DNA from: Klebsormidium nitens
Lineage: Eukaryota; Plantae; Klebsormidiophyceae
Reading direction: 5' to 3'
Length of the DNA stretch: 64,000 bases
Assembly (NCBI GenBank): GCA_000708835.1
Contig: DF237254.1
Coordinates: 1 to 64,000, forward strand
Part shown: piece by piece, positions 4,072-39,900 of the stretch
Layout of the letters: each line of letters begins with the position of its first letter
Position numbering within the stretch: the first letter of the stretch is position 1
Notes under the pieces: model-generated
Told to the model about the DNA's origin: nothing
Databases searched by the model: none
Seen by the model: the letters and a program-made list of their open reading frames with translations, nothing else
Made by a program: the position numbers and the translations under genes

Positions 4072-4629
4072 GACAGACTCGAAGTAGTGCAGTGGACATG
4101 AGGGTGAACTGGCCTTGGTCTCCATCCTGCAAATGCTTGTGTGACTTCCAATGAGCTTCATCAAAGTCGATTGAGGGTGTCCAAGCCTCCTGTAGTGGAA
4201 CGTCTCCTTTTGAAAGGCTTGAGTGTAGACAGCAATGTCAAATCGAAAAAAACGTGTGACCGCATTGGATTGGCCTATATCCAACACACCCGAAAGGGAC
4301 GAAGTCTACCTTATGAGCATGAGAGCCCAATCAAACTTGTGTAGGCCACCTTGGCAAGCCTCGTTTCAGTATGTGTTTATACGAGCTTTCTGGAGCTTGC
4401 CTATGTTCAGTCTATGTACAGTCTTGAGATCTATAGTACAGATTTTCGGAGTCTGAACTTATGTGGGACAATAAAGGTGTGGTTGAACGGGCTCAGACAA
4501 TCTCTTTGTTACAAATACTCAAGCTTGCACTTCGTGAATGGGGCATAAATTCACACACGGTAAGGCGCTCATACCATGATGAGCGATATCTAATAGCCGA
4601 CGCATAGCGCGTAGCTTTCGTGAAGATCC

Positions 4630-4986
4630 NNNNNNNNNNNNNNNNNNNNNNNNNNNNNNNNNNNNNNNNNNNNNNNNNNNNNNNNNNNNNNNNNNNNNNN
4701 NNNNNNNNNNNNNNNNNNNNNNNNNNNNNNNNNNNNNNNNNNNNNNNNNNNNNNNNNNNNNNNNNNNNNNNNNNNNNNNNNNNNNNNNNNNNNNNNNNNN
4801 NNNNNNNNNNNNNNNNNNNNNNNNNNNNNNNNNNNNNNNNNNNNNNNNNNNNNNNNNNNNNNNNNNNNNNNNNNNNNNNNNNNNNNNNNNNNNNNNNNNN
4901 NNNNNNNNNNNNNNNNNNNNNNNNNNNNNNNNNNNNNNNNNNNNNNNNNNNNNNNNNNNNNNNNNNNNNNNNNNNNNNNNNNNNNN
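4630..4986. other. Assembly gap (run of N)
   Basis: Continuous N bases; ORF-track entries spanning it are artefacts. Confidence 0.99.
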
Positions 4987-9969: not shown

Positions 9970-11594
9970 GTAAGAGGAGAGGTACCTGGGTTCTGCTCTA
10001 GAGCCAGATTCAGTAAGCTCCCTAGCAAGTGACGGTTGTACAGCCTAGAACGAAACGCTCATCTGTTGCAGATCAAGTCGCTTGCTTGTCCATTATCTCG
10101 GGCCGATACATTCACTGCAGATGCATGTGCTTTACCCATACACGCAAGCAAGCCTGAAAGAGAAGGGCGTTGTCGAGTCTCGATGACGTCAGACGTGGAC
10201 CATTTTCGACGGACTAAGATCCAATCTGTTGACTGAGTAGGGCACAATACAGCCTTGAGGCAATAACCTAGACGTGGTACCTTGACCTTGCTGCAATGCC
10301 TTGCCCGCGGTACACAATAGATGTTACAAAAAGTATACTAATCTGCTTTCGCATGTGAAATGGATCATTGAGTCCATGACATGATGCACCATTGGAGGCT
10401 CATGCCATGGCCCCGGCCGCACACCATGAGCCGCCATACTTTCAAACATAATTATTATGGCCGCCGCACAGCATGGTTTCGCATGACACAATCTTGGCAT
10501 GATCTGAAGCTATAGGCCCATGCAGGGACAAACCGTCATGGCTACCTATAGTAACATAAGGGTGTATACGTCAGATTGAGTACATATATCAACGATCGCG
10601 ACCGATGAACTAATTCTGTTGCAACTTGGACGCATATATTAATCGTATCTCCTAATTAGCGTACACGCGATGGGCAAGCTTGCGCTCTGCTTTCTCGATG
10701 CATGAAAACAAGTGCAATCGAAACTTGGTCGGAGCGTCGGACCCCTTTCCGCATCCGAGCACAGACCGTGGACATCACGTGGGCAAACATACCGTGCGAC
10801 ATCCGATTGAGGTTCACTGCACGCGGCTGACATCGGGCATGACGGGTCATATGCAGAGGACCAGCCCTCATGTCACGACATCATACACGACCATTGCAGA
10901 CTCGGATGCAAGAAAGTCCTGACCTGTGACTTGGGCCGTCTTGCACAGGATGTATCATGCACAGAGTACAAGCCTAACTAGGTTCGTCAAAACTCCACAT
11001 GGTTTGACAGCAATCCTGTGACGTTCTTTAGCAAATAAACATAAAGCAGTCCATTTTGCTAAACCCACCCGTCCTCTTTGCTGTTGTAGTCGGATCCAAT
11101 ACTGCCAGTGCTCAAACAACTATAATCGCTACCTAGCCATCGACGCCTGCATCCAATTGAGGTCTTACCCTACCTCAACCCCACTTCTTTCAAGACCCGA
11201 CCTGACGAAGACTAATCTGCACCCCTTGTTGCTTGTTGTAGCGCGACTTGACTAGCATGTGAAGATGCCTGCACGACACGACGAGCGGCACAGGGGTGAA
11301 AACTCGGAGGCGTCAGCGGGCGAGGCACAGGAAAAAAGCACTCATCTTCAAATGAAAATATAACAGACTTCCACGGAGACACCGCAACCACACAAAACTG
11401 AAACCAGATAGGGAAACGCAGACCAGATCAAAGGAGAACCATCAAAACACAACCGAAAAAGACACGGGCAGAATGATTTGGGGGCTGGCAGGACTCGAAC
11501 CTGCATCTCTCAGCACTGCGATTCGCGGCGATTGGCGTTTCAGTGTCAAGCTGAGCTGGAAGGGCTCAAGTCTGATCCTAAAAGAATTGTCTGC

Positions 11595-11726
11595 CTCAGT
11601 CGGAAATCAACCGAGGGGTCTGTCAAACCCACTTGTGAAGTGGTTTGAAATTGTCTGTGGCTCAGTCGGAATTCGACCGAGGAGTTGAGAAGCTCAGTAG
11701 GATGTGTCTCGAGTTGAGAAGCTCAG
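11595..11726 (-). repeat. Duplicated hairpin modules in the 3' part of the copy A insert
   Basis: Minus-strand hairpins CUCGGUCG-AAUUC-CGACUGAG (11681-11661) and CUCGGUUG-AUUUC-CGACUGAG (11615-11595), each 8 bp with G-U wobbles. CTGAGCTTCTCAACTC occurs twice (11697-11682, 11726-11711). Confidence 0.7.
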
Positions 11727-12024
11727 TTTCGAGTAGACTGTCGACCAAGCGGAAAGCTTGACGGTTTGTCTTTTCGAGGAGTGAACGTGACGGCTCAGTC
11801 AAACCCCTAGTCCTTTAAGCCGGAAAGGCCAGTTTGAAGACTGCCGCGGTCTGAATGCCGCCGGTGGACGTGGAGAAACCGGTAGAGTGTTACCGAGAAT
11901 CTGGTTTGGAAGGTCACCCGAGAATTGGAACGGCTTGGGGAAGTCGCCGGCCGAAAAGGCGCGTTTGAATATCCACCAGGAGACTTGCGAGAGATCGGTT
12001 GGTTGTAACCGAGTTTGTGAATTG

Positions 12025-12322
12025 TCTTGAGGATACTTCCGAGAATGGTTCTGAGAAGTGTCTTGCAATTGCTTGAGACTTGTCTTGGAATTTGTGTTTC
12101 AAAGTTGTGGATTGTCTTGAGATTTGTGTCGAGGCTTGTCTTGAAAGTTGTGTTGAGACTGTTGGACTGTCTTGAGGTTTGTGTTTAAGATCTGTGCTGA
12201 GACTTGCCTTGAGATATCTGTTGAACTTGGGGATTCGTGTGACAAGTACTGTCTTGGGATTTGTGTTCAGATTTTCGGACTGTGTTGAGAACTGACTTGA
12301 GATTTGTGTCAAGACTTGTCTG
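12025..12322 (-). repeat. Degenerate 12-nt tandem repeat inside copy A (transcript consensus about UCAA(G/C)ACAA(A/G)UC)
   Basis: Plus-strand units such as TTGTCTTGAGAT / TTGTGTCGAGGC / TTGTCTTGAAAG / TTGTGTTGAGAC recur through the interval. Confidence 0.8.
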
Positions 12323-12987
12323 AAATGTCAGCCGGGTTGGAAAACTCCGGCTTTCTGACTGAACAACTAGAACGGTCAAAAGTTGCTCATACAAGCAAGC
12401 GAACCAAATCCTCTGGAGGGTCACTCTGAGAGACCGCTCGTGAGGACCTTCTAGCCGTCAGTGGTAGCGGGAAATCCGCTTAGGAATGTCTGGACTGCTC
12501 GACCCTCGCAGTGCTTTGGCGCTTTACCAATTAAGCTACAGCCCCTTAGGTGGTAATCAGTCTCACAGCAATAAACTCGAATGACCGAAGATACAAGATG
12601 CAGATGGAGCGACCGGTGTCAGATTCGAACTCAGGCTGACGACTTTCCAAGAGAAGCACGCAATAACCAAGCAAGAAACTTTGCCAGGCAGACTTTCTGA
12701 TGCTACTTCTGAAGACTTCCACGGACCAGAAGCTGCATCCCGAAGCAGGAAAGGATAGCGACTCAAGAGGAAATACAGACGGAATACAGAGAGCTAAAGC
12801 GAAGCCGCATTTCACTTCGGGTCAGAAAGGAACGTACAATACAGCAGGACAGATCAGAAAGGCGCGCAACAGCGCACGGCTGCAACTAGCAAACCTGTCC
12901 TGACGCTCTTCTCCCGAGCCCCCCTTACCAGCCCCGGGAGACCAACCGCAAAGTTTTGACGCCTGTCGTCGCTTAGCGGAGAAGTCT

Positions 12988-13082
12988 GGACGGCTGACGT
13001 GGACTGACGGACGCCTTCCGGACGGCTGACGTGGCTTGATGGACGCCTTCCGGACGGCTGACGTGGCTCGACGGACGCTTCC
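12988..13082 (+). repeat. Three tandem 31-32-bp repeats plus a partial fourth, between the two ncRNA loci
   Basis: GGACGGCTGACGTGG(A/C)(C/T)(T/-)(G/C)...GGACGC(C)TTCC units start at 12988, 13020 and 13052. No spacers between units. Confidence 0.9.
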
Positions 13083-13452
13083 AGACGGCTCGCTTGAGGT
13101 GGCTGGACGGCCCCACCGAATTTCTGCACAAAAGACGAGCGCCTTCAGTCCCACTTTGAGACCCATAATCAAAGCTATGACCACACGCCGAGAATGGGCA
13201 AAGAAGTGTGACAAGGCCGATAAAAGCACACTTTGTGAGGCGTTCTTAGTCATTTGCCCGACCATTCTGCTCTGACGAATTTGGATGAAACGCATCAAGG
13301 GGCAAAGGCAAAGTAGGGCCGAAGCTTGCAACACAATCCCAAAAAAAGGTCCAAGCACGTCAATCTCAGAAGAAAGATACTCAAAATTTGAGAAAGCCAA
13401 AATGCCAAGCCCAAACGATAAGAAAATAAGAAGGAAGGAAGTTTCGAAGTTA

Positions 13453-14226
13453 TGGGGCTGGTGGGATTCGAACCCACATCTCTCAGCACTGCGATTCGTG
13501 GCATCAACGTGACTCAGTTGAGAACCCGGTCGAGTTGGATGCATGCATGATTTTGGTCGCTGTTTTTGCCCGTACCCACCAAGGGGCATAGAGCTAGCAG
13601 ACCGACACACGTTCCTTCTGACCTTTTTAGTGGGGCCTGAATTCGACAGTGCAGTTGGCAGCGTGGTGGCTGCGAAGTTGGGTTTAGCAGCATTTAACTG
13701 CGGTTTGTTTCTGCAGCAGGTTGGGCTGCGAAGTTTGATTTGCAGCGATTTGGGCCGCGGTTTGTGTTAACCAGCGTTTGATTGGCACGTTTGTAAGTCC
13801 CAAGAGCACAAGCGGAATTCTGCCGACGTCACAAGCACAGGTGCGGAAATCCAAGGCGATTGTTCAAGTCGAGGTGCCTGGGGGGGCGTTTAAACCGTTT
13901 CAGAAGAATCCCGTTTCTGCCGGTTCAGAGCACGGGTCAACTCGGCGTGCGGGATTTGCAGCAACCGGAAAAGTCCCTTACGTGCTTGATTTGTGGCACG
14001 GTCATCTTGCGTTGGTTAGCCCCCGGTTTAGGCGTTCAACGACGTTAGCCAAAGGACTCCGCGTTATCTGTTTTGCAAACGTGGCTCCGACAAGGAACCG
14101 AGAAGGTTCCAAGTTGCCTGAGAAGTTTGAGGTTTGAGGTTTCGCGTTTGGCGATTTTTGCACTGGGCCGTTAGGCCTGCCGTTTCCCTCGCAGTGCTTG
14201 GCGCTTTACCGTTAAGCTACAGCCCC
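13453..14226 (-). ncRNA. tRNA-closed long ncRNA, copy B: tRNA 5' half + 694-nt insert + tRNA 3' half (774 nt)
   Basis: Minus strand 5' end GGGGCTG-TA-GCTT-AACGGTA-AAGC-GCCA-AGCACTGCGA (14226-14189). 3' end TCGCAGTGCT-GAGAGAT-GTGGG-TTCGAAT-CCCAC-CAGCCCC-A (13494-13453). T4 runs at 13426-13423 and 13402-13399, T7 at 13347-13341. Confidence 0.75.
13651..13770 (-). repeat. Degenerate roughly 12-nt A/C-rich repeat inside copy B (about GCAGCCCAAAUC)
   Basis: Minus-strand units TTAACACAAACC / GCGGCCCAAATC / GCTGCAAATC / AAACTTCGCAGCC / CAACTTCGCAGCC. Confidence 0.65.
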
Positions 14227-14943
14227 TTATGTTTTGGTGATCAGACGGAGAATCAGAACAGCGCAGCAGACAAAAAGAAGCGGACATAATCGAGACAAGG
14301 ACTCAACTGATTCTGGAGATGGGGAAGGGAAAAAGTGCTTCACATGGTCAACATTCAGTCGTCAGAGAAGAAGTTGGAAGCCTTGATTTTTCGAACGGAC
14401 CAGATTGGGCATACAGAGAGAGTGCAAGTAAAGACTCCGGTCAAAGAAGCGGGAAACTTAATGAAACGGTTCGTAAGCCGCCTTATCTGATCTGAGCCCC
14501 AAGCATCGCCCCGCCTAGGCTCCGTTGACTGCTTCTCTCGAGCCTCCCCCTCAACGGAAACGCCACGTGTCGACTCCGCAAGGACCCTGTGTGCAAGGAC
14601 GAAAGTGAGCACTTGGTGAGCACGGCTGCTGAGGCGGGCGCCAAAAATAGTGACACCAAACAAACATCCTTTGGTCTTCCAAAGCATCGGGCTGACCTGT
14701 TTGGGGTTTCCGTAAGGACAGCAGGCGCTTTTCAGAAAGGGAAAAGAGTGCTCTCAAGAAATCTGGAAGGGGCGAAAAGCCCCAAAGCCATACACGTTCA
14801 ACCCCCAACATTCGTCGAAGCAGCAACTTAGAATCAACTACAGAAATACCTTCGAGACAGTCCAGGACAAAGAGTCAGCCACAGAATGGCAACCGTGACC
14901 AGAGTCCAATAGCTTATCCGAGCGTTGTACATTAAAATGTTCC

Positions 14944-17900
14944 ATGGCTTTCCCAATGAATATAAGACCAGCAAAGCTGCCTAAACCATTAGTATTACCA
15001 AGGCTTACTCTGCCGCCACGGCCATTACTAACCCCAGATACGGACAATCGGAGGTATTGGTATGTGGCGAGCAAACGAAAAGACACGTTCAGAAAAGCAT
15101 ACAAACCCCCAGGAACTCAGACAACAGCAACGCTGACCCTGCCCAGAAGGAATGCCGGAAATGGACACAAATGGACACTGCTTAAGGATACCACTACGGC
15201 TCTGCTCACTGAAAAACTCTGCGGTTTTGGCAAAAGAATCTCAAAAACAAGAGATCGGGAAGTAGCCAGACTATTATGAAAAGCAGATTTTGACTGGCTG
15301 GTTGCGGCCGACAACACCTCCTTGCCCTCTGGAAAACTCTCAGAAGACCTGTCTAAAATCATCCCCCAGAAACGCAGAGGCCTGGCGGCCCCCCTGGCGA
15401 GGGGCCGGGGGCAGGCTAGCAGAGACTGAGTGTGTAGTGTCATACGGCACTTCCTATCAGGACAGGTGTCATCACCGAGTTTTCCAGTGTGCAAGCAGAA
15501 GAGGTCAGCAAACGTCAGAGACACAGAATTTTGGAGCCAACAAAACCTCGACCAAGCAGACTGATCGTGAATAGTAGTAACCCAGAACGCAGTACTCAAT
15601 ACTGTGGCAGCAGAAGGACGACAGAAACTGCAAAGGGATACTTTGGGAATTGAAATAAGAGGGAGGCTCTATCAAGCACAAGAATCGTTGCCCTCTTACC
15701 TGCTCTATGCTGGCCGGAACAGGTAGTCGGGGCGCGGCGTCAGTCATTCGAGGTAGTAGGAAGGTACGTGTTGGCGCCCACCGAAAGTCCTGCAAAGTGC
15801 ATGCGCCCACACTTAGCCCACAATCTCTTCTCAAATCCTTGCTTCGATTCACAACATCAGTGTCGAGTTGCCCCTCCTTCTGGAACAAAAGTGGCAACGT
15901 TTCCTGCATACATAAGCAAGTTCGAGGATTCACGCCTACATAAGCGAAGGCAATTGTGAGGTTATGGGGTCAGAATATCATCGCTCAAAATGGCACCATC
16001 CGGCCATGAACGGGCCGTTGGCTTCCTATCAAGGGAGCGAAGGTTGCTCTCAGCCAACCTTGACAGAAGAGGTCATTACCAGGCTACCCCAGCTGTGGCA
16101 GGAAGGCTGAACAAACAGATTGAATTCTAAAAAATTCCCGGACGAGCGAAACAGACTTACTTCAAAGGTCGAACAAAAACGGAGAATCTTGTAAGTGGAC
16201 AGATACTGACGTTCTAAACACAGCCCGAAAGATGTATCAGGATGCCTTTGACAATTTCAGTCTGAAAGAAAGCCGACATCACAGGCCTCAGGCAGCCAGT
16301 TCTCAGCAGAGGCCGAAACCCTTAGCCGGTAATTCCATATTGAATGTATCATCACAGGCCGTGACTTGAAGGGGTTGCAGAGCGAAGGAAGGCCAAAGAT
16401 TGAATACATAAAGTGGGCTGTGAAGCTTGAGCCCTGAGCGGTTGTGAGCGACCAAGAAACAAACACCGGGACTCAAAACTTGCTAACAAGAGGTTCACAC
16501 GAAGCAGCTGACAACTATTGCTTGCCAAAATCAAACGGCAAGGCCTTCATGACAGGAGCAGCAGATGCTCCAGAGAACAAAAGAAGAAAGGATCCTCGAA
16601 AAGAGGGTGCTTTCTGGGTTGCCTCAGAGTGTGTAACATGGATGACCACAGCGGCCGAAGCCTTCAGCGAAATCCGCTAATTTGGTCATCATTGGCAACC
16701 AGCGCAACACAAACAACAACCATGACCAGTCACCGAATTGGGGGTCAGAACTGAGACTTCTTCTCCTTACCCCGATAGCAAGTCAACCGAGTCGGGGACT
16801 GGAAGCTCCGCAAAGACGAAACTGCAATCCTTACTGAACTTGAGCTGCAAAAATTGAATGAACATGCCTTTTTAAAAGAACAAACCATTGCCAGCAGCCT
16901 GTCAGCCAGAGGAAGAACGGCACAAGAGTTAATTGGAAAGGAGGCTGCCAAGGGTTCCGAATGTGCTCAGAGTGGTGCATGATGCGTTCACCGAGCAGCA
17001 CTTGCTGCTCTCGCACAAGAGGTGTCAGAAAGGTGTGTTTCATCACAGCACATGATGGCCTGGTTTTGTTCGATAACAAGAGGTTGACTGAAGCGAACTG
17101 TGGATTGCAAGAGAGGTAATCATGACAGCTTGGAGTTGGAATGGCGCTGAACCGACCTGACAACGGAAGCTACAAACTGTTGGAAAATTTTGAAACAAAG
17201 AAGTGAAATTGTGCAGTTATGCGGAGCAAGCAGGAACAAGACAAAAAGCAAAAGCACGCTGTTGCGGCTCAGTGTTGGCAATTTGTAATTGTTCGATTCC
17301 GCCAGCGCTTTCCCCACGACTTGGTCAGTAGAGGGAGCTTGGTTATCGTCACAGCCGGATGTTGATAGAGAACGTGCTTTTTTGAAAGAAGCAGAAAGAT
17401 CCGCTACACCATACAGGGGACAAGAACTGCGCCTTGTGGATTCATTGGCTGATCAAAAATCAAAAATCCTTGTCCTTCAAAAATCAGACGCTGTTCTGAT
17501 ATACATGTCCAAAAGGTGGCCCTCAAGCATGACTCACACTTGACAAGGAAGTGGCTGAATTGAAAAAACAAGTGGTTGAGGTCGAGCAAGTGCTATCGAG
17601 GATGTCAAATACTGAATATCTGAAGCGCGGTAACTGGGGTGTGCATTGAAGACCACAACCAGCCATTTGCTTCAAGTACTCTTGCTACTAGTTGTTGCGT
17701 TGAGGGCCACCTGGCAATGGCATGACCCCTCTTTGGGTTGTAGCTTGACAAGTAATGAAAGAAACGTTTACAGACATACCTTTCAGAGAGGTACTTCAAA
17801 TACTCAAGCACAAACCCTGGCTATTACACAAGATACCCGAACGGATGGTCAAAAAGAGAGAGAGTCGACTCTAGAAACAGAATCACTCTTTTGAGTACGT

Positions 17901-20900
17901 AGTCAGGCTGCCTATCTGCCATCAAGCGCAGATGACATGAGCGTGTCAGGCTTTGCAGTCGGTCCATCATTACTGTCAGAGGGAATCCGAAATATGCTAA
18001 TCATCGTCCACGCTCTGGCAGAAAGGCCGGTCAAAAAGTGAATTTCAAACAAGGCCACCATCCAACGAAGTAGAAACCGAACAGAAACACATGAAAGGCA
18101 GAAAGGGGTTGTCAGGGACGCTGTTGCTCAGAATTGAATGTTCACAACAGCCAAGGTTGGAAGGCCTTGTTCAGCTCTGTTGAGCTTGATTATTTAACGT
18201 GAATCATCATAGCAACGCCTGCCGCTGACGTATCGCTTGTGCAACCTTCAAGCAAAGAACACAGAGAAGCCTTTGCAGACTCGCCGTTTGACCAACCTTC
18301 AAGCAGACAAATCCAAATAAACAGCATCTTCATTGGGCTATTTCCCTACAACAGTTTCATCTCAAAGGAAACTTTCCCCAACTTCTCAGACAATGATTCA
18401 CAAACTGAGGATATCAGCACCCATAAAGTCTGGCAGATCAGTGAATTGTAGTCATGAAATCGTCATTGAGACACTTGGAAAGGTCTTGTCATCATATCTG
18501 CCACGTCTAGACCCTGAAACGGTATAGGGCAATCACAGAACAAGAGCAAAGTAGATAGCCACTCTCCCAGTGGAGAGGAAGAGAGGACTGATGATGGAAG
18601 TGGTGCAAGCAGCAGCAGAAGGAAACAACAGCTTAAAGGAGGAAAAGCAAATACATCAGCAGTGGTAAGGGGAGTTCTAACAAGGCCTCAGATCAGGTCT
18701 CTCTTTGTGCTCATCAAGAGTCAGGCAATGTAGGTAAGTGTCTTTTTCTTCATCACGGGCCTTTCAACACAGAGCCAAGTGAGGCAACTATCCTAGAGAA
18801 TTGAATAAAAGTAGAACAATATCAAGAGCCCTCAGACCTATCGATCGGTTTCCATGTGCTCTTGAAGAGCGGTCAGGAGTTTATTTGAAATTAACCATCA
18901 TCGGGCGGGACAAAGTTTCCACTGGTGAAACACAACTCAGCTTTTCATCTTTCCTGTGAAGAAGTGCTCAAGCAGGCTACAAGCAAACTCTTGTTTGAAA
19001 GACGCGAAAAGCTAATGTATACATGGTAGAGTTGAGCTCAGACAGCCAAGAGTTGTATCTTCAACGCCACGAAGTAGCTCGGATACTCTAGTCCGAAACA
19101 CTGTTTTTCATCATAGCAACTCTACCTGCCAACAAAAGGTTCTTATGATAATGGACTCAGATAGGAGCGAAAGAATTAGTGCTCATTGCCGTAGCTCACA
19201 TGAGCAGGACGAAGTATCGTCTGTGTCATCATAGTCCACCATTTGTTTAAGACAATTGTAGTAAGCAAACCCAACTACCAAACATGGAGGGGCGGTCATA
19301 CACAAGGGTATCAGATGGAGAGAAGCTCATAAGACAGAAACCAGATCTGTTGGATCTTTCCTCTCCTGGTTGGCAGGAGCATGAACTAGAAGCAGACAGG
19401 ATGCACCGACTTTCGCATGGCATAATTCAAGTAGAGAGTAATGACAATTGAAAACATGACTGGCACACTCATCATGCTTGCAGCACTGCCATTGACCTCA
19501 TAGTAAAAGGCAGAGCTTCACCACAACACCAACCATTCCACATTCTTGCAAACGCCAGACCCGCTGAAACGCCAAAACTCTTTGGAGGAACTTCCGCTTT
19601 CAAGCTGCAACTGTTACCAGACTCAGAACTGCAGAACGGCGACGCCTAAACAAAACAGAAAAGCTTTCAAGACTCACCTTAAAAGGGTTTGGTTTGGAGA
19701 TGGTTTGGCGATCGCGGTCCATGGTAGCTTCAGAAGAAGGATTAGTAGGGCCACCAAGTAGCTTGGACAATCAGTGTAGGACCACCAAGTAGCTTCGCTG
19801 GGTGCTGTGCTGTACTGTCCAGATCCTGCATCCAAAAGATCAAATCAGCAACCCCTACTCGTCGACTTGTTAGAAAATTTTGTAGTCCTCTTGTGATCCT
19901 CAATGCAGAATCTGGTTAAGAGAAGCTGATAAACTCAGTACCCAAAACCTCTATGGTCAAAGGCTGAAGCAGAGCAGCTTCGAACTTCGAAACGGATGCA
20001 GATATCATCGCTCAAAATGGCACCATCCGACCATGAGCAGGCCGTTGGCTTCCTATCAAGGGAGCGAAGGTTGATCTCAGCCAACCTTGACAGAAGAGGT
20101 CATTACCAGGCTACCCCAGCTGTGGCAGGAAGGCTGAAGGGTTTCTCAGTAAACAAGCAAGCAAATCTCAATCAAACATCATAGGGTGGAAGAAGCTGTG
20201 AAAATTTCACAGAGAGAACCCCAAGACAAGCAGTCGAGCGGGCGAAAGAAACCATTGCCGTCAGGAGCTTCATATGAAAGCAGACTCCGTACCTTGTAAA
20301 CTGTGAACCATTCTATTTCCCCGTTACCTCCAAAAGCCAACAGTGGCAGGACCAGAAGCTTCTAGGACTCAGCTGCAAAAGGTGCTGGTTCGCCTGCCCT
20401 CAGAAGAAACCCATTCCACAAATGTTAGTTGCGGACTGTGCTCTGCAATCTCACCACTTCCTACCTAACAACCGGAACAGCCTCCGCAGCCGCAATGACA
20501 GGAACTTTCCGAAGCCCAGATTGAGGTTGGTCCTGCACCAGTAAAAGAGTTTGCTTAGACCAGAATTGGAAATGTGTGGTCAAACATTTTTACGTCGCAA
20601 GTGGGTCGATGCATCTTCATAAGAAACAAAAGCCCAGAGCCTTGCCCTCAATGCATAATTGTCAGCAATTGGACCCCGAACTCAACTACCAGGGGAGATT
20701 TCGCATACAATGACTAGCTCAAGGTCGTGGGTAAACTGCGGCCAGTCAAGCAAGCAGTTGTCAGGTCCAGAAGAATAGAGAAGGCATCAGCTTTAGGGAA
20801 AGAATGGAAACTTTGAAGCGGTAACGGCTCTTCCTGAACCACTCATACCTTCCTTCGAGAAGCCAAGTTTCTTTCAAAAATAAGGTACGTACATTGAACA

Positions 20901-24151: not shown

Positions 24152-27100
24152 ATGGTGACTTGCAGCAACTGCGGCAGGACCGGTCACAACAAGAGAAGCT
24201 GCCCCGAGCTGAAAGTCGTCAAGGGAAAGGCCGCAACCCCGGTCCCTCCACCAGTGGAGACCAGTTCGGAGCCTCCAAGCGCTGCAGAGACCCCGACAGC
24301 TGGAGCGCCCGATGAGAGCTTAACGCAAATGGACATCCAGGTTAGTCTCTGTGTTTTCTACTGGGCTGCTGGAGGTTCCGGGATGCGTTAGCATGACGGC
24401 AGGTTGCTTTTATGTGGGTTTGTCTGAGGGTCACTGAACCTTGTCTCTACTTTCTTGTTGGTGCCCTACTGGGTCCACACTGCATCAAACAGTCTGCTTT
24501 CGATGTATTTGTCTTCTCTGTTGAGCAGATAGTACTACTCCGAAGGGTCATGTTGATAGCTGCCTGAGTAGCCTTCCACTGATGTACGGGACTTGAGTTT
24601 CACACAGCAAGTCCATTCACAAGTGCATAAGTGCAGCTTTGCTTGCCATTTCGAGGCCAGATTGTTTGTATTCTGGAAAACTCTGTTCGTTCAATTGCCA
24701 CGCATATGACCCACCAAGCAGACCTAACAGCGATACCAATGATCTCTTTTCCTGCAGACAAGTGACACAGCTGAAGCCCCAGTTCCAGAAGCTGCGGCAG
24801 CAGTTGAAGAGCCTGCGCCCGTACACGAGGAAGCGCCTGCCGTTGACGTCGCACCAGTGGATGCGAGCGACGATCCTCAGCCGGAAGTTGACGATCCGGT
24901 AGCAGATGAGGGGGTCGCAGACGAAGAGGTCGTAGACGCAACTGCGTCGCTCGCTGAGGTTGCAGCTCTTGCTGCCGAGTCTTTAGTAGCACAACCGGTG
25001 GAGGCGGAGACGGTGGCCAACGGAGACCACGAGAACGGGGACGTTGTCGCTGGAGACGTTGTTGTTGGGGACGCGGCGGAAGCTCCCGCTGTCGAGGACA
25101 GCGAGCCGAAGGCTGAGCTGGCGCCAGGCACGCCAGATGAAGCGATTGGAGAGCCGGTTGTCGAAGCTGGAGAGAAGGACGAAGCTGAGCAGAAGGCAGA
25201 AGAAGCTGGGGAGAAGGCGGAAGAAGCGACGGCAGAGGGCGCGGACGGTGCCGAGGCCGCAGGCGGGAAGGCGGTGCCTTCTCTGGCTGCTGCGATCGAG
25301 GCCGCGAAGGCGGGGACGGGGGCTAAGGCTGAGGGAGAGGAGCAAGAGCAGGCGGGGGGTGAGCAGAAGGGCCCGGAGCTGCCCCCGCCGGAGTACGAAA
25401 CGTTCGAGATCCCGGAGCACTGGCACCAGAAGCCGTGCGTGCGAGTGACGGGAATGGGCGGGAAAGTGACGGAAGAGGTAGGTGCCATTTGGCATCATTT
25501 GGCGCAGCTGGCGATCGCAGAGTGTCGTTCATTCAGCAAAAAGGTCTCCTCGAGTGGCATTTAGGGAAGCTTGCGACGAACTGAAACCACTTTACTTGCG
25601 GCCATTGTGTTGTTTTGGGCTTTTCATTCTACTAATAGTCCCCTAGTCAAGTTTGAAGAATAGGGGGCGTTTCACGGAGGCGTTTTTGGCACCTGATGAG
25701 GTTTTGTCTTGGCAGGGGCTGCCCCTACAATTGTCAACTGTCTTCAATGATACTATCGTGGCTATTTCGAGTGGCCTGTTATCGCCAGTGCTCCGAAGCA
25801 ATTTTGCATTCCTTTCAGCACAGTCTTCCTTGAAGTGGTTTCCTATGCGCAATCTGACAGCCTCCCTGGGCTAGATGAGTCAGCCCCTAACACAGCACCA
25901 TTGTCCAACAGGAACTCCGCGAAGCGCTGTCTGCGCACGTTTCAGTAAAGACCATCTCGTTCGAAGACGAGGACAAGAAGGTCGCGAACGTGTGGCTGGA
26001 CGTGCTGACCAAGAGCGAGGAAGAAGAGACAGCCGCGGTGACAAAGCTCAAGGACGCAGTAGGGGAGCTGGAAATCAACGAGCAGAAGCTGAAGCTAGAG
26101 GGCTACCGGCCGGACACGCTGCTCTTCGTGGGCAACACTCCGCAGGCGATGGGCGACGAGGAACTGAGGGAGTTCTTCAAGGGCCACGGAGAGATCCAGC
26201 GCGCATTCGTGAGCATCCCTCCTGTCGCAAAGGCTTTGCTTTCGCAGATGGCTTTATTCTCCATTTTAGATTATAAGATCTGCCTTCTGTCTTTCCTGGC
26301 TCGTATGCAGCCTCTCGTCTTGGTTGATCAACCGTGCAAAGAAGCAGCTAGGTCAGCCAAGGCTTCTTGAAGTCCCTTCTTAAGTGCCTTTGCTGATTCC
26401 CATTTGCTGCCGTGAAAGCAGCCACGTCATGTTACTTTACGCCTTCCAATCCCGAGGTATATGGAATTCTTCTTTATCAACGGCTTTTCCATATTAGCAC
26501 TTCCACAGTTGCCGGTTTGTGCCTGCTAAATTTGAAAAATTTCAGCCCGCACCACTTCAATCATTCGGCCGACGTTTGTTGCTCAGAAACTCAGCATCGG
26601 AGGCGAAGGAAAGCTTTGCACGGACTTGTGTTACGGGACCACGATTGGATGACGATTGCGCTCTCGGGCAGGTTCCGCAGGATGCGTGAAGGCAGGAACA
26701 AGGGCTACGGATCAGAAAACACCTCTGTACGGTTGGTACTAAACTCGACGTCGTTTGTTGTTGCCCAGATTGACCATGCGTGCGGCCTGTGTGCAGATTG
26801 TGAAAAACGCGGAGGGCAAGAGCAAGGGCTACGGTTTCGTGGAGTTCACTCACAAGGACGAGGCGCAAAAGGCGAAGCTGGTGGGCGGGAAGACGCCGTC
26901 TGACGGGGGCAAGTTCATCCGGGTGGAGCCGGGCGATGCGTACCAGATCAACGAGATGTTTTCGCTGTCGCTGTTTGTGGACCACCTCCCAAGGGACTTG
27001 CCGAATGTGAGCGATGCACATCGGGCTTTTATTGTGCAGGATTCATGAGATAGTGAGTTGCGTTTCAAATCTGCTTGTGATTTAGCATCTGAGGAGCGTT

Positions 27101-30100
27101 GCTGGCGAACGACCCATGCAAAGAAGATGTTCTCGGTCGCTTTCCATGGACCCGTTGCCTTTGGACTGGGCATGCAAATGGGAACCAATGTGACCTTGTG
27201 AAGAAAGGAACACTCGTGCACACTCGTGCGCATCCTCTGCGATTGCCCTTCGTTTCCAGAAGTCGACTCGGTGACGTTTCGATGTCTCCCCCTGCAGATT
27301 CGCGACGCTTTGTGGAAGACATTCGAGTCGCATGGCGGTCCTGTAAGGGACGTATACGTGTTGACGGACTTCCACACGGGCAACCTCAAGGGTTACGCCT
27401 TCGTGCACTTCCGACATTCCCTCCACGCCGATCAAGGCAAGTTCTGGTTCTTTCAAGGGTAGTACGTTCTTCCGTTGTATTCCACAGGGAAAGACACCCT
27501 TTCTGACCCGTTTCTTGCTTTCGACTGTCTCATTCGCCAGTTGTGCCATGGTCTCTGGCTGTCGAGAAGGAGTTAGTTGGCTCAATTGCCTTGTTTGTAC
27601 CTTGCCTTGGCCTTTTGTGACCAGGTCATCAGATTGGATCTGGAGACTGCTTGTGACATCTTGCCAGAACATCACTATGTTTTGTGAGAACCAACTCAAC
27701 CCGAAGCAGCGTATCAATGCCATCATTTCTGCGCCTATCACAATCTGAAATGTTGCGTGGTTGTCACTCCAGCTTGGCGTCAGCTTGATGGGCACACTTT
27801 GAACGGAAGCAGTCTTCGGGTCGGGTTTGCAAACCCAACCAAGGCAGCAGCAGTAAGTTAAAGATCCTTGCTTGTTTCGAGTTACGTATGTGCCAATCAT
27901 GCCAGCCTGTTCGCTGACATCGCTCCAGTGCTCAGCAGTGAGTTAAAGATCCTTGCTTGTTTCGAGTTGGGTATGTGCCAATGATGCCATCCCGTTCGCT
28001 GACATCGCTCCAGTGCTCTCAAAATCTAAGATGCCCTCTTAGGGCAACAAGGCAATTGAAGGGTCTCAAGGTTGGAATCATAGGCTCCCTCCCTATCATC
28101 CTTCTGTTCTTCAGAAACGTTGTTGTTTTATTGACATTGCCGATTTCTTTGTAACCTTACTCGATATCATGTCACCAGCATGTGTCTTTCACACCCCGTC
28201 TAACCGATGAGTCTACCCTTAACTTCTCCTGCTGCCCTGCTGAAAGACTTGTTCTCTGGTCGCAGGAGAAGGCGAAGCGGCAAGCATTCAGGGGGCCTGG
28301 TCCCAATAGGTCGCCGGCGGGGGGCTTCGACCGACCTCGGTATGACGACAGAAGGGACGGGGGTCGGGCTCCGTTCCGGCCCGGGGGGCGCTTCGACGAT
28401 CGGGGACCCCAGCAGAGAGGCCCTCAGGTATGAAAATTGTAACGAGTAGATGCACGCGGAGCCTGTAAACGGGTCATTCTTCTCCTGGGTTCTGATCGCC
28501 TGCTTCTTTGGCGCTTGCGGAATCGCGTTCAGGCGGTTTATACCTGTTGTTGACGGCAACCATAGGGTCAGAAGCTGCATTGCATCGAGTTTTCTGCTGC
28601 TTATGTTAATGTACAGCGGAACTTTGTAGATTCTGACGCGGAGGCTAAGAAGACCCGAGTGGGCGTCCGTATCCCAAGCCGTGTTCTTTTAACAAGAACA
28701 CACGCTTCATCTTACGCTTTCAAAATCATCCTCGTGAACGCAACATCACTGTTTCTGCAGTTTGATCGCCGCCCCGTCATCAGCCCCCGCGACGGCCCCC
28801 GCGGCGGCCGCACCGGTTTCTCCTCTCCTCCCCCCATCCCCTACAACCAGCGCGGCCCCCCCCAGCAGGGTTTCAACCGCAACGGTCCTCGTCCCTTTAG
28901 CTCCCCCCCCCAGCAGAACATTCGCGGCACTTTCGGCTCCCCCCCGGGGCAATACCGCCCCCCCCAACAGCAGGGCCCGCCTTTCCAGGGGGGAGGGTTC
29001 GGCAACTTCCAGCAGAGGCCTTTCCAGGGACCAGTCAGAGACGCGGCCCCCGGCCCGGTGCGCTTTGCTGGGGGGGCTGCGGCAAGGCCCGGATTTGCCC
29101 CCCAGGCGCGGCCAGGATTTGGCGCGCCACAGGTTGCGCCGGTTGGGCAGGTTGCGGGAGGTGCGAGGCCTGCGTTCGGTGGTGCGCAGGGACCAAGGGG
29201 GGCTGGGCCGCAGCGGCAGGGTGAGTGGCTGGGAAGAAACATTTTATGGTCTGGATGTCAGTGATTTTCGGATGTTGAGGCTTCTTGTCTAACGGTTTCA
29301 ATCCATGTACTCCTGGCCAACCTGGTGATGGTGCGGTGTCCATTCCCTGTCCCTAAGACAGAATGGTTCCGCTCTTGTTGCACACATTTGATGGCCCCTT
29401 TCTTGGAGCTGCTGGCTGCTCTTTTCGAATGGCGCCTTTTCGTCTCGAAGCCACGACCTTACAGAGTTAGGCTCTTCGCCAGCTCCTTGACAGCATTCAC
29501 TTAACTCCCTATCAACTCCCTATCCTTTGCAGCACCTATGTCCGGCATGCCTGCGCGTGCCGCTGGACCTCAGGGGGCTCCTGCCGGGGGTGCCTTCCAG
29601 GTAAGTAAGCAATGATGTCTTGGAGGTAGGGTTGCCGCTTGACAGAGACAGGCTAAATAGAGGCTAAATCGAATCCGCAATCAATTGTCACCAAGTTAGA
29701 TGCGTTTCTCTCAGAAGTCGACTTCTCGGTTTGCGCTGCCACATCAGTGGACCAGGTTCTTGAGACGTTTATAATCTGGTCTCCATATCATACAAGAATG
29801 GTGCCTGTAAGCCTCGTGCCCCTTTCAAAGGGGTTCAAAAAGTATGTAACATTATGAGGTGGGTATTATTCCGGAGTTTTCATATAAGTGCATTTCTTCC
29901 GCCGCCCACCAGGTGGTGTGCGAATTAGAAACCTCTCACAGGATTTGCAGTCCACCTGACAAATTGAAGTCTTGTGCACAGGGTTCGGATATGGCTGGAG
30001 CGGGGCGCCAGGTGGCAGGCACAGAGGTGAGCCAACTGGAGCCGACTTTCGCAGCTTGCACATGTACTTTGTTGAACAGCTGGCTTGTTGCCTTCTTTTC

Positions 30101-36922: not shown

Positions 36923-39900
36923 CTATACCTTCTTTGTCGCAGACTGCTTCTGGGTCCCCGCCTTCAGGTTCTCTCTCACGTAGTTCCGCTTCGGGGGGTG
37001 CTGCGCCTGCTCTAGTTTGGTCGCCAATTCCGGACTGCGAAAACAAAGCGAAACGAGGCTCAAAGTACATTCCGCGAAGTCAACTTTTCACCGATTTACA
37101 GACGACCAGGGACTGCTTTCCTCTCAACTTGGCTCCTTCTGAAAGGTTTGCTCGTTCTGGCGTTGGTAAACAAGGATTTCTGTAGACGTTCTCGTCACTC
37201 GGGGTTCGATGTCGAGATTGCCGAATCTTTATGATCACATTTACGCGACCAGACTATCCGCCAGATTCTGAAGACGCGATAAGTGCACGCACTTCGGCAC
37301 ACTTAGATCAGGCAGTGCATGGAGTAAGTGTCTAGCTCTCACGCTGCAAACATGAGGAATCGATCCGAGCAGCTGTTCAGAATCTTGCTTCCAAGTTCGT
37401 TAGATACATAATCGAGCTTTTGTGCTTTCAACTCTCAGAAATACCCCAAAGAGGCGCAATTGGAAACGAATGACCAGTAATTTAGCGTCACGAAGAGCAG
37501 TAAGCGGCGGCTCTCCAAGTGCCCGAATCATCCAACCGGGCCTGGCTCGTTGTTGAAAGCCATAGGGGTTGGATTCGGTTTTGGATACGTCTTTCCAGCA
37601 TTGCCCCTCGCGGAGGAAGAAGAAGGAACCACAAGCAAAACCGCACCTTCACATGAAAGCTTGCACGGCGGTGGGCCAGATTCAGAACATTGGAAGAACC
37701 GCTTCTCACCTCAGCTTGGAGTTGATGCGGGGCGGCGCGACCGGTGGCTTATACTCCGGCCGACTTCCCTTGACCTCGTAGATCCAGTCCCGCTCGTCCG
37801 TCTGCAGAACAAAGTCGCCGTCAGTACATCAATCAGCAACCTTCGCAGAGGACAAGCTTCGCGGATTTAGAACCTTCAGAAACCCGTGCTGGTTTTCGAG
37901 AAGCGACCTCTCCTCAATATGCGAACGCGGCTGTCAATCAGATCACGACGTAGCAGCACGCCAGGATAGGCCGTTGAGTCGGTGGCAGAGCCGACGTTTA
38001 TTATGTTTTGCATCCTGAGCTCGTCAAAAGTGCCTTCTTGAAACCAATGAAAAGCCCGCGCTCAAAATCAGGAGAGCCTTTTCCCTTACTTCCCGGGAGT
38101 CACTTCTGAAAACCCAAACAGCGAAGGATGAAAACCTGTCAAGTGTCAAACCTTCATCAAGTCAAAACAAAATGCAGATACTCAATTCATTCCCAGATTT
38201 GATCATATCTTCTTCTCTTAGGGGAAGCAACTTGGAGAACACTTGTCCGAGGTCTTCGTCAAATGCTCCTCTCACAAGCTCTGTTCCACTTAGCGCTTCT
38301 GCGTTCTGCCTGGCCTCTCGGTTGTATCCTAGTTGCCATCGGTTACCTCCAGCTTATGACGGAAAACTGATTTGCAGGATCTGAGGACATGAAAATGTAA
38401 TCAAATGCTTTCTATCAGACTGCGACAAACCCAACAGATGCCCTGCAATCCTAAAACCCCTAAACCGCTAGAAACCTTAAAAACCCTCAAAGAAAGCGGC
38501 GCGGCAAGATCCGGCTGACGCCACTCGCGTGAATGTACCGTTTTCCGATCAGGGTTTTCCCGGCGTATTCCCGGGGCGTGAAAAGTACCCCTAACTCATG
38601 GCCTCGTCGGCGCATTTAGAAGATGTAGTCAAATGACCTTAGTTGCACCTAACTCAACCGCAAAGAAACGTACAACAAGTAGGCGTGCTCCAAGAAGAGC
38701 GACGTGACAAGAACTCTATTCCATGACTCACGAGGATATACAATTTGCCGATCAGGGGCTTCCCGGCGTATTCCCGAGGCGTGAACGCCACGCGCAGCTC
38801 CTGCCCTCGTCCGCCCGGTTTAAGCACTCCCCGGGTTGGTTCGACGTCGAATTCTAGCGGGCTACCGGGGCCGAAAAGTGCCCGGTAGGAGATCTCCCGG
38901 TCAGGAAGAGCGGGCAGTGTGAATGTGCTCACGCCCGTCTTGCCGACCGGGGCTTCCACGTGGATGGTACCGTCCGGTTCGGGCTCAGACGCCTGCGGTA
39001 CGAACCTTTGAAATTGGTCTTTGAAGGAGCTGAGTGTCACGGTCTGACCGGACACAGAAAGGGGGCTCCGTGCAAGATTGTTCCAGTGCCCTGAACGGGA
39101 TTCCGCACACGAACGGCTCATAGCTTTCCGCCTCGTTCCGGCGGAACGTGTAGAGAACGGTTTGAAGTTGCCACGCCGTCATTCTATGTTTCTTTCAAAA
39201 CAGCATCGAAGACGACCGGATCACGACTTACAATGCGTTCAAGGTCCAAGTCAGGAGTTCTTTGAACAAGCAGTTACATAGCCCCGCCAAGAAAACAAAT
39301 GGTTTTGCACCAGCCCTGATCCGCTTGCAGCAGCTCTCTCCATGCCTGACTTCAGCATCTTTAAAGCGCTACAAATTCACATTTAGACTTGAAAGTCGGT
39401 TCTGAATCGAGACTGACAGCCTTTTCTAACTTCGAAACTCTGCGTTGGCTTTCGTCATGCTCCTCGATTTGATATCTTCTTTCATACGAAGGAAGACGAA
39501 ACGGAACTTTCAGCACGGAACGGAACGCCAAACTGACCTCGAGAGCCATCTCAAAGCGCCACCTGCCGCCGGTCTCTTTGGTGATGACGAGATCCGCTGC
39601 CGTTGACAGAATCCGCAGCGGAGCGAAGGTCACCCGGAACCGGAGCGGCTGGTCGGGACCGAAGATGACCTGAGCAAGGAAGAGGCAGCGCATAAGCCTC
39701 TGTAAGTTCCTTTTCTATCAAGGACAGTTTCTGCTTTCCAATGTTGTTCCCCGTGTTCTTTCACCTGAGTTCTTTCCTTTTTTGTACCCTTCTCGATCTC
39801 ACTGAAAGAGCGGCCGCTAGAACTTCAAAATGTCGCTGCAAGGAAAGATTCATAAGGCAACTCGTTTCTGCCAAGAAAAGTCCCGAGGACAGCGTCTTTT

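Follow-up and report, generated by a model that had tools for sequence, protein, structure and literature searches.

The 64,000-nt stretch of the Klebsormidium nitens genome analysed here (contig DF237254.1; the window) contains two loci at which the parts of a tRNA-like sequence are held apart by a long insert. The question is what such loci make. A first-pass annotation proposed a family of long non-coding RNA genes transcribed by Pol III or, alternatively, tRNA genes with giant introns.

The two units are on the minus strand, at 14226–13453 (unit A) and 12545–11480 (unit B), and the sequence at both loci has the split layout first described: an acceptor 5' strand and D arm, one strand of a helix, an insert, the second strand of the helix, and GAGAGAT followed by the T arm and the acceptor 3' strand (Table 1). 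The elbow residues that are invariant in tRNA, said to have been kept, are present – U8, A14, G18G19, G53, C61 and a T-loop of TTCGA(A/G)T. An 18-nt 3' motif has exactly two occurrences, compared to 0.07 expected by chance. The closing helix is a perfect, G+C-rich 10 bp in both units, or 13 bp with two mismatches tolerated. When each full-length unit is folded, the MFE and the centroid structure both close the acceptor stem, this helix and the T arm. The anticodon arm had been described as opening into the insert. Its junction is non-canonical: the D stem and the helix are separated by 4–5 nt where a tRNA has 1, and the variable-loop side has 7 nt.

Table 1. Coordinates of the units and of the host transcript segments in the window (in the host intron rows a slash marks a splice site)
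Feature	Coordinates	Strand	Sequence or content	Evidence
3.9-kb host intron	15792..19679 (+/-2 nt)	-	GT..AG	loose contig end at 15791 maps to 19680–19709; splice sites
Host intron with snoZ112	14586..15698	-	GT..AG	joint 14585 to 15699 in two runs; Rfam match; splice sites
Host exon upstream of unit A intron	14486..14585	-		RNA contigs; splice sites
Host intron with unit A	13123..14485 (+/-1 nt)	-	CAG/ATAAGG ... GTGCAG/A	joint 13122 to 14486, one run only; weakly supported
Conserved leader upstream of unit A	14227..14244	-	CTGATCACC...TAA; counterpart upstream of unit B at 12546–12560	
Unit A	13453..14226	-	774 nt long; insert of 694 nt enclosed by a tRNA-like fold	sequence; full-length fold; ARAGORN intron mode
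Unit A 5' part	14189..14226	-	acceptor 5' strand, D arm, 4-nt linker, helix 5' strand	sequence
Unit A acceptor 5' strand, D arm and linker	14226–14199	-		sequence
Unit A helix 5' strand	14198–14189	-	AGCACTGCGA	sequence
Insert A	13495..14188	-	694 nt, A/C-rich (A 0.27, T 0.20), one T4 run	
Degenerate repeat within insert A	13668–13759		29-nt period	
Unit A 3' part	13453..13494	-	helix 3' strand to discriminator A	
Unit A helix 3' strand	13494–13485	-	TCGCAGTGCT	sequence
Unit A GAGAGAT, T arm, acceptor 3' strand and discriminator A	13484–13453	-	T stem GTGGG/CCCAC	
Host exon between the unit-bearing introns	12928..13122	-	32-nt tandem repeat	
Host intron with unit B	11268..12927	-	CTG/GTAAGG ... 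GTGCAG/G	joint 11267 to 12928 in three RNA runs; splice sites
Unit B	11480..12545	-	1066 nt long; insert of 984 nt enclosed by a tRNA-like fold	sequence; full-length fold; ARAGORN intron mode
Unit B 5' part with helix	12506..12545	-		
Unit B 5' part before helix	12545–12516	-	acceptor 5' strand, D arm, 5-nt linker	
Unit B helix 5' strand	12515–12506	-		
Insert B	11522..12505	-	984 nt, A/C-rich (A 0.28, T 0.23), four T4 runs	
Repeats within insert B	12075–12184		24/55-nt period	
Unit B 3' part with helix	11480..11521	-		
Unit B helix 3' strand	11521–11512	-		
Unit B GAGAGAT, T arm, acceptor 3' strand and discriminator C	11511–11480	-	T stem GCAGG/CCTGC	
Last host exon	10930..11267	-		RNA contigs terminate at 10926–10935

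Only the two end blocks are conserved between the units, with 87% identity in the 5' block and 88% in the 3' block. The inserts and the intron flanks have identities of 0.49–0.54, the level of shuffled sequence; for the inserts, which were described at the outset as failing to align, the value is 0.49 in both the real and the shuffled comparison. The conserved blocks stop at structural borders, and on the 3' side conservation ceases at position 72. Four stem positions differ between A and B, and these form two compensatory pairs in the T stem, with no pair broken. Base composition also shifts at the borders – inside the units the fraction of A is 0.27–0.28 and that of T 0.20–0.23, compared to 0.17–0.22 and 0.31–0.36 in all host segments. 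Comparison of the two sequences supports a real, selected, split tRNA-like fold around a long, fast-evolving RNA. A search of other species found no orthologues of the units, so that selection on the fold is read from two paralogues; the same pattern could arise by gene conversion from active paralogues.

According to RNA contigs, the two units occupy separate introns of one spliced, same-strand snoRNA host transcript, which extends from at least 19.7 kb to ~10.93 kb and has no ORF in its joined exons. The intron next upstream of the unit-bearing introns has snoZ112 alone. The 3.9-kb intron has 11 distinct Rfam snoRNA matches, with only snoR2, snoR1 and snoZ157 reaching the gathering score. 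Between 10900 and 14600, there are no C boxes, compared to 12 in the neighbouring snoRNA cluster, and no Rfam snoRNA matches. The intron of unit A has an AT rather than a GT donor, and is mostly retained.

The RNA evidence consists of assembled contigs from four runs, which carry no strand or end information. Depth is 0 at 14600–15399 (snoZ112 intron) and 15800–16399 (3.9-kb intron) and 3–20 across the units; since it falls to zero inside the spliced-out introns, the signal over the units is real RNA, not DNA contamination. RNA from the inserts is present at about the level of the exons, and is low for the unit A insert in run X13 (0–1.3, compared to ~15 for exons). In three of the four runs the body of unit B is deeper than its own 5' intron flank (6.3 vs 0, 17.3 vs 7.6 and 20.3 vs 12.8). 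Contigs of unit B extend 108–184 nt beyond the predicted RNase Z site: in X7 and X15 they stop at 11296 and 11372, before the 3' splice site, and in X1 and X13 they reach the last exon. Because the contigs overrun the RNase Z site and, in those two runs, enter the last exon, much of the signal is accounted for by simple retention of the intron. At 12545 and 12518 the contigs end in k-1 overlaps with a 32-nt node common to paralogues, and these ends are therefore assembly breaks rather than 5' ends. The same paralogues bear out the earlier suggestion of a family, and show that it is expressed. Paralogous contigs share the 5' half at depths of 32–280, and the contig depth of expressed copies elsewhere is as high as 269. 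In the 5' part of unit B, the 32-nt stretch at 12516–12547 is identical in highly expressed paralogues, with a 32-nt contig at depth 280 and paralogous contigs that have 3–4 mismatches.

On another reading the units are true tRNA genes, for Arg(GCG) or Ala(CGC), from which the splicing endonuclease would remove giant introns to leave a decoding tRNA and a long linear or circular, tricRNA-like intron RNA. Like intron-containing and tricRNA-producing nuclear tRNA genes, the units have a tRNA body broken in the anticodon arm and a helix between body and insert; RNAs inserted into engineered tRNA scaffolds can be set free as circles (PMC6614914). Both loci are called by ARAGORN when introns are permitted, but its anticodons conflict – Ala(cgc) for B, Arg(gcg) for A – as do its splice points, and the call requires a shifted D stem with a mismatch. 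In default mode there is no call at either unit. GCG is not a usual eukaryotic Arg anticodon, and with G3-C70 in both units in place of G3:U70 there is no Ala identity. Neither unit fits the cloverleaf expected after intron removal, with its 5-bp anticodon stem, 7-nt loop (U33, purine 37) and single nucleotide 26 between the D and anticodon stems. An invariant 3-nt bulge is expected for tRNA intron splicing, and over-tight helices impair it (PMC6614914); the helix here is an uninterrupted 10 bp with no such bulge, and a brute-force search for a BHB-like motif gave only palindrome artefacts as candidates common to both units. No spliced tRNA joint was found in the RNA contigs, which is weak evidence since the contigs miss small RNAs. 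The longest reported nuclear tRNA introns in photosynthetic eukaryotes, those of O. tauri, are ~64 nt and are called 'unusually long' (PMC13578239), and inserts of 694 and 984 nt are more than 10-fold longer than any nuclear tRNA intron reported from algae or plants. The giant-intron alternative, poorly supported in view of the missing motif and the inconsistent anticodons, is very improbable. Transcription as autonomous Pol III genes is less so, though still rather unlikely. TFIIIC would bind an A box in the 5' half and a B box in the 3' half, the whole 0.8–1.1 kb would be transcribed, and the fold would direct end processing. Both boxes are intragenic and intact, and are the best conserved parts of the units (TAGCTTAA..GGT and GGTTCGA.TCC). 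Each unit is preceded by a conserved 18-nt leader, the inserts contain less T than the host introns and lack T5 runs, depth climbs near the 5' border of unit B, and paralogue depths reach 144–280. Against this, the boxes are ~0.75 kb (A) and 1.04 kb (B) apart, compared to the few hundred bp tolerated by yeast TFIIIC, and the internal T4 runs, one in insert A and four in B, are not fewer than composition predicts. The oligo-T reported after each 3' end is not adjacent: unit A is followed by its first T4 at a distance of 27 nt, and unit B by its first T5 at 20 nt, which the unit B contigs pass. Both units are also in the sense orientation in introns of a Pol II-type host, and one contig that is spliced at the upstream intron continues straight through unit A.

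The units could also be decaying, functionless copies – relics of a tRNA-framed small RNA family, with inserts grown by repeats and insertions, ends kept by gene conversion, and RNA arising from intron retention. Degenerate tandem repeats in both inserts are consistent with this, as are their unequal lengths and unalignable sequences, the defective AT donor of the unit A intron, the continuity of the X1 and X13 contigs with host exons, a 1-nt indel in the linker between the copies, and the T arm of unit B, which is shared with one paralogue (loose ends 11484/11515, run X13). Against decay are stems that are intact in both copies with every change compensated, conserved blocks that terminate at structural borders, a sharp switch of composition at the borders of both units, and a unit B body that exceeds its intron flank in three runs, and we consider it unlikely. 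Conserved ends around unrelated interiors, several family copies in the genome and a 10-bp inverted repeat would suit non-autonomous mobile elements that keep only their termini. This is the least probable reading, and a remote one. Target-site duplications are missing where conservation stops, and the inverted repeat, of exactly 10 bp, lies in the interior and not at the termini. The two ends are not inverted repeats of each other; they complement one another as halves of a tRNA fold, in which changes are compensated. The units also lack coding capacity and match no ribozyme or Rfam family. A tRNA-derived SINE or a DNA transposon was rejected on the split of the tRNA halves to the two ends, the lack of target-site duplications, and an inverted repeat that is only short and internal.

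The explanation that we favour, at about even confidence, is that the units are two paralogous, non-decoding, tRNA-derived modules in introns of a Pol II snoRNA host gene, with their ends probably cut by tRNA-processing enzymes. The two distant halves would pair within the host RNA, zipped by the 10-bp helix, and would rebuild an acceptor/T-arm minihelix with a D/T-loop elbow. This is the surface recognised by RNase P, RNase Z and the CCA-adding enzyme, all of which can dispense with an anticodon arm. Cuts at G1 and past the discriminator would free RNAs of 0.77 kb and 1.07 kb, each with both ends locked together in the acceptor stem, and the A/C-rich, poorly structured, repeat-bearing insert would be displayed as a long loop. 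A putative role of the fold as end-processing signal and stability clamp is plausible; CCA addition, stabilisation of the products and a function of the insert are likewise putative.

The units belong to no known Rfam class and are neither tmRNA nor SINE, judging from Rfam and ARAGORN searches. In architecture, their closest precedent is GUT15 of Arabidopsis. The tRNA-like RNA of GUT15 is encoded in an intron of a Pol II long non-coding RNA and has no canonical anticodon arm; CCA is added to it, and it represses the splicing of the intron that hosts it (PMC6152437). Both systems have canonical acceptor, D and T arms without a canonical anticodon stem-loop in an intron of a spliced non-coding transcript, and in both a host intron is poorly spliced; the GUT15 host is a capped, polyadenylated, alternatively spliced Pol II transcript, and its element is not autonomously transcribed by Pol III (PMC6152437). 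The GUT15 element is tRNA-sized, while the units open into 694 or 984 nt; here two units are in successive introns of a snoRNA host gene; and CCA addition and processing have been shown for GUT15, while the units are known from sequence and contigs. MALAT1 and NEAT1 also have a tRNA-like fold in a Pol II non-coding transcript, the mascRNA type, with an expected reading by RNase P and RNase Z. There a small contiguous element marks the 3' end of the long RNA, while here the halves bracket a long RNA with both ends in one acceptor stem. Sno-lncRNAs, like the units, are long RNAs from host-gene introns with both ends protected by small-RNA structure (PMC4234469), but the ends here are halves of one tRNA fold and not two snoRNPs, and neither the units nor their surroundings have C/D or H/ACA boxes. 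In bacterial and organellar tmRNA, which combines a tRNA-Ala-like domain with a tag reading frame and pseudoknots, the 5' and 3' ends likewise form a tRNA-like domain that closes a long internal RNA. The units differ from it in having no G3:U70, a full D arm, and a nuclear, intronic context. ARAGORN in tmRNA mode (-m) found nothing in the units, and the Rfam tmRNA model (RF00023) gave a local match at 13450–13487 of 20.6 bits, compared to a gathering score of 47, that covers the T arm and acceptor end only.

Pol II non-coding RNAs such as MALAT1 and GUT15 use tRNA-like folds as processing signals, to our knowledge always in the form of small contiguous elements. Here the fold is built from halves separated by 0.7–1 kb, and compensatory evolution maintains it while the interior varies freely. 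If the units are not processed, they remain a clear example of intron retention being affected by tRNA-like elements in a non-coding host gene. If they are, introns would have a new route to long RNAs with protected ends, a fold closed across a kilobase would prove open to RNase P and RNase Z, and snoRNA host genes would be tied to tRNA-type processing, as a natural counterpart of engineered tRNA scaffolds. It is possible, though this is a tentative suggestion, that the units represent a lineage-specific class of intron-derived long RNAs with both ends sealed in one split tRNA fold, excised by RNase P and RNase Z from Pol II snoRNA hosts, possibly with CCA added or with the ends ligated into a circle, and with the fast-evolving, A/C-rich repeat loop of the insert as the working part, for example as a protein-binding platform. 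Such a class would be the tRNA counterpart of sno-lncRNAs.

Units A and B are two minus-strand split tRNA-like folds, each closed around a long insert (694 nt in unit A, 984 nt in unit B). This layout, already described in the first-pass annotation, is confirmed by minus-strand reading of 11300-14400, by the count of the 3' motif and by full-length folding. Both units open with GGGGCTG, the acceptor strand, followed by TA and the D arm, which reads GCTT / AACGGTA or AATTGGTA / AAGC. A linker of 4 or 5 nt (GCCA or GCCAA) and then AGCACTGCGA follow the D arm. The 3' part of both units runs through TCGCAGTGCT, GAGAGAT and the T arm to the acceptor 3' strand, CAGCCCC, which is followed by an unpaired discriminator (A for unit A, C for unit B). 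The 18-nt 3' motif has exactly 2 occurrences in the window, compared with 0.07 expected by chance. The acceptor stem, the 10-bp helix and the T arm all close in the MFE and the centroid structure predicted for each full-length unit. The long arm joins the tRNA body in a non-canonical way; read as a derivative of an anticodon stem of the tRNA-Ala type, the arm has C27-G43, two mismatches and then 10 perfect pairs. The unit starts, GGGGNTGTAGCTYA, are tRNA-Ala-like in look, with G3:U70 lost.

Units A and B, the introns that hold them and the neighboring snoRNA features (a slash marks each exon-intron boundary)
Feature	Coordinates	Strand	Basis or borders	RNA-seq runs with the splice joint
Unit A	14226-13453	minus	774 nt, sequence reading	
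Unit B	12545-11480	minus	1066 nt, sequence reading	
Intron holding all of unit A	13123-14485 (joint 13122->14486)	minus	CAG/ATAAGG...GTGCAG/A	one
Intron holding all of unit B	joint 11267->12928	minus	CTG/GTAAGG...GTGCAG/G	three
Intron holding snoZ112	joint 14585->15699	minus	CAG/GTAAGA...ACAG/G	two
snoRNA cluster, plant-type and other families	15335-20135	minus, same as units	Rfam	

The assembled RNA contigs placed on 10400-16399 came from three Klebsormidium nitens studies and from run X13, which is filed under another organism name and whose contigs are nearly identical to the stretch. The joints in these contigs and their splice sites place each unit in an intron of its own within a spliced, non-coding snoRNA host gene. 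The intron of unit A appears to have an AT donor in place of GT (an AT..AG pair) and was spliced in one of the four runs and otherwise retained; by its sequence, the donor looks like a U2-type site with G+1 changed to A. RNA depth is 0 at 14600-15399, in the snoZ112 intron, and at 15800-16399, in a 3.9-kb intron further upstream, whereas it is 3-20 across 10926-14585, which indicates that the signal over the units is RNA and not contaminating DNA. A contig spliced at the snoZ112 intron continues straight through unit A.

The snoRNA cluster is dense, with five Rfam matches at gathering score (snoZ112, two snoR2, snoR1 and snoZ157) and about eight more below it. The two snoR2 copies are at 15973-16108 and 20000-20135. 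The 3.9-kb intron (15792-19679) is deduced from a loose contig end at 15791 that matches 19680-19709, with GT..AG borders; 11 distinct Rfam snoRNA matches lie within it, 3 of them at gathering score. The contigs stop at 10926-10935, marking the 3' end of the host transcript. Its four downstream exons, joined, have no ORF, and no convincing protein-coding gene was found within 10 kb of the units. The 195-nt exon between the unit-bearing introns contains a 32-nt tandem repeat at 12988-13090 (3.3 copies, 89% matches), which yields a spurious 262-aa ORF (12822-13610, minus strand). Elsewhere in the window there is an assembly gap, a run of N at about 4600-4950 that is seen as X in ORF translations, and a probable multi-exon protein gene on the plus strand at 24857-29300. 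The predicted product of the latter combines an acidic N-terminal region rich in Ala and Glu with an RRM-like segment (LLFVGN...GEIQRAFV) and a tail rich in Gly, Pro and Gln.

When the two host segments are aligned locally, only two blocks prove conserved. The 5' block (87% identity) extends from an 18-nt leader over the 5' half and its helix strand to GGG, and the 3' block (88% identity) extends from GCCRCGAA over the other helix strand to position 72 of the 3' half. Identity is 0.49-0.54 for the inserts and for 200 nt of flank on each side, compared with 0.49-0.52 for shuffled sequence, and nothing in these regions rises above the shuffled level. The core stems (acceptor, D, T and the 10-bp helix) are all intact in both units. 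A and B differ at only four stem positions, which together give two compensated pairs in the T stem (U-A to C-G and G-C to A-U); the remaining differences are confined to loops, linker and discriminator. The fold is therefore maintained, whether through selection acting on this locus or through conversion from selected paralogues, and the pair is a genuine, selected feature.

Metagenome scans with the 3' half and the 5' side yielded no orthologues of the units: the 3' half had 0 matches, and the sole match to the 5' pattern (contig L001, 4803-4824) was rejected as a chance 22-mer, lying antisense in a protein-kinase-like ORF of a bacterial contig with 60% GC. Contigs from other loci match only 40-42 nt of the 5' half of unit B, with 3-4 mismatches. 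One paralogue is a 707-nt contig with a depth of 269 in run X1 and 144 in X13, and another, with 736 nt after its 5' half, lies within contigs of 2395 and 2132 nt (depths of 32 and 53). A third, on an X13 contig, has its T arm in common with unit B, and the 3' strand of its helix appears to carry two extra nucleotides.

The inserts have no snoRNA boxes and no meaningful ORF, and searches found in them no Rfam family at gathering or E-value threshold and no group I/II intron, ribozyme or snoRNA. Folding of unit A exceeds that of shuffled sequence only weakly (z = -1.8). Each insert contains degenerate tandem repeats (29-nt period in A, 24/55-nt periods in B). Both are A/C-rich, and base composition changes abruptly at the borders of the units in comparison with all host segments. 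After correction for composition, the 5-mer signatures of the inserts resemble each other no more than those of controls do.

Two interpretations had been offered for such units, autonomous Pol III genes and tRNA genes with giant introns, and both are disfavored. Conservation of the leader, the low T content of the inserts and the abundance of the paralogues all fit transcription by Pol III. However, both units are sense-oriented within Pol II introns, their intact A and B boxes are 0.75-1.04 kb apart, and the inserts contain T4 runs (one in A, four in B), no fewer than composition predicts. The oligo-T reported to follow each 3' end is not adjacent to it: the closest downstream runs are a T4 at +27 from A and a T5 at +20 from B, and unit B contigs extend beyond that T5. 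For this pair of loci, a Pol III gene is the less likely reading.

As for giant introns, ARAGORN does call both units, in intron mode only, with anticodons and splice points that differ between the copies and with a shifted, mismatched D stem required; in default mode it reports no tRNA or tmRNA anywhere in the window. Substrates of the endonuclease and those for tricRNA have an invariant 3-nt bulge, and over-tight helices impair them (PMC6614914). The helix of the units has no bulge, and a brute-force search for bulge-helix-bulge motifs gave only palindromic-helix artefacts common to both. Among photosynthetic eukaryotes, reported nuclear tRNA introns reach about 64 nt at most (PMC13578239). 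A third intron-mode call on the minus strand, a tRNA-Ala(tgc) with a 330-nt intron at 39289-39712, is a false positive, since the sequence there lacks tRNA features and its fold is no better than that of shuffled sequence.

The units are tRNA-like modules embedded in a Pol II non-coding RNA, with putative processing and function. In each of the four runs the body of unit B is covered at least as deeply as the exons, and in three of them more deeply than its own 5' intron flank (6.3 vs 0, 17.3 vs 7.6 and 20.3 vs 12.8). The unit B contig stops short of the 3' splice site in two runs, at 11296 in X7 and at 11372 in X15. This excess and these stops fit an RNA that persists longer than the remaining intron sequence. 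In X1 and X13, unit B contigs extend into the last exon. Contig ends at 12545, and the start of the 707-nt paralogous contig at G1, were considered as RNA 5' ends and rejected, because they are k-1 overlaps with a 32-nt node (12516-12547, depth 280) common to unit B and the paralogues. The contig ends at 12545 and 12518 overlap this node by exactly k-1 and are breaks of the assembly, not ends of an RNA. We infer that the units may be processed by RNase P/Z.

The nearest precedent for units A and B is the tRNA-like RNA of Arabidopsis GUT15, which comes from an intron of a Pol II lncRNA, has no canonical anticodon arm and is not made by Pol III; it receives CCA and inhibits splicing of its own host intron (PMC6152437). 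MALAT1-type modules and sno-lncRNAs (PMC4234469) offer analogies in function. The literature searched describes no class in which a split tRNA fold closes a long RNA in introns. The new features here are the split topology over 0.7-1 kb, the occurrence of a unit in each of two successive introns, and the hosting by a snoRNA gene.
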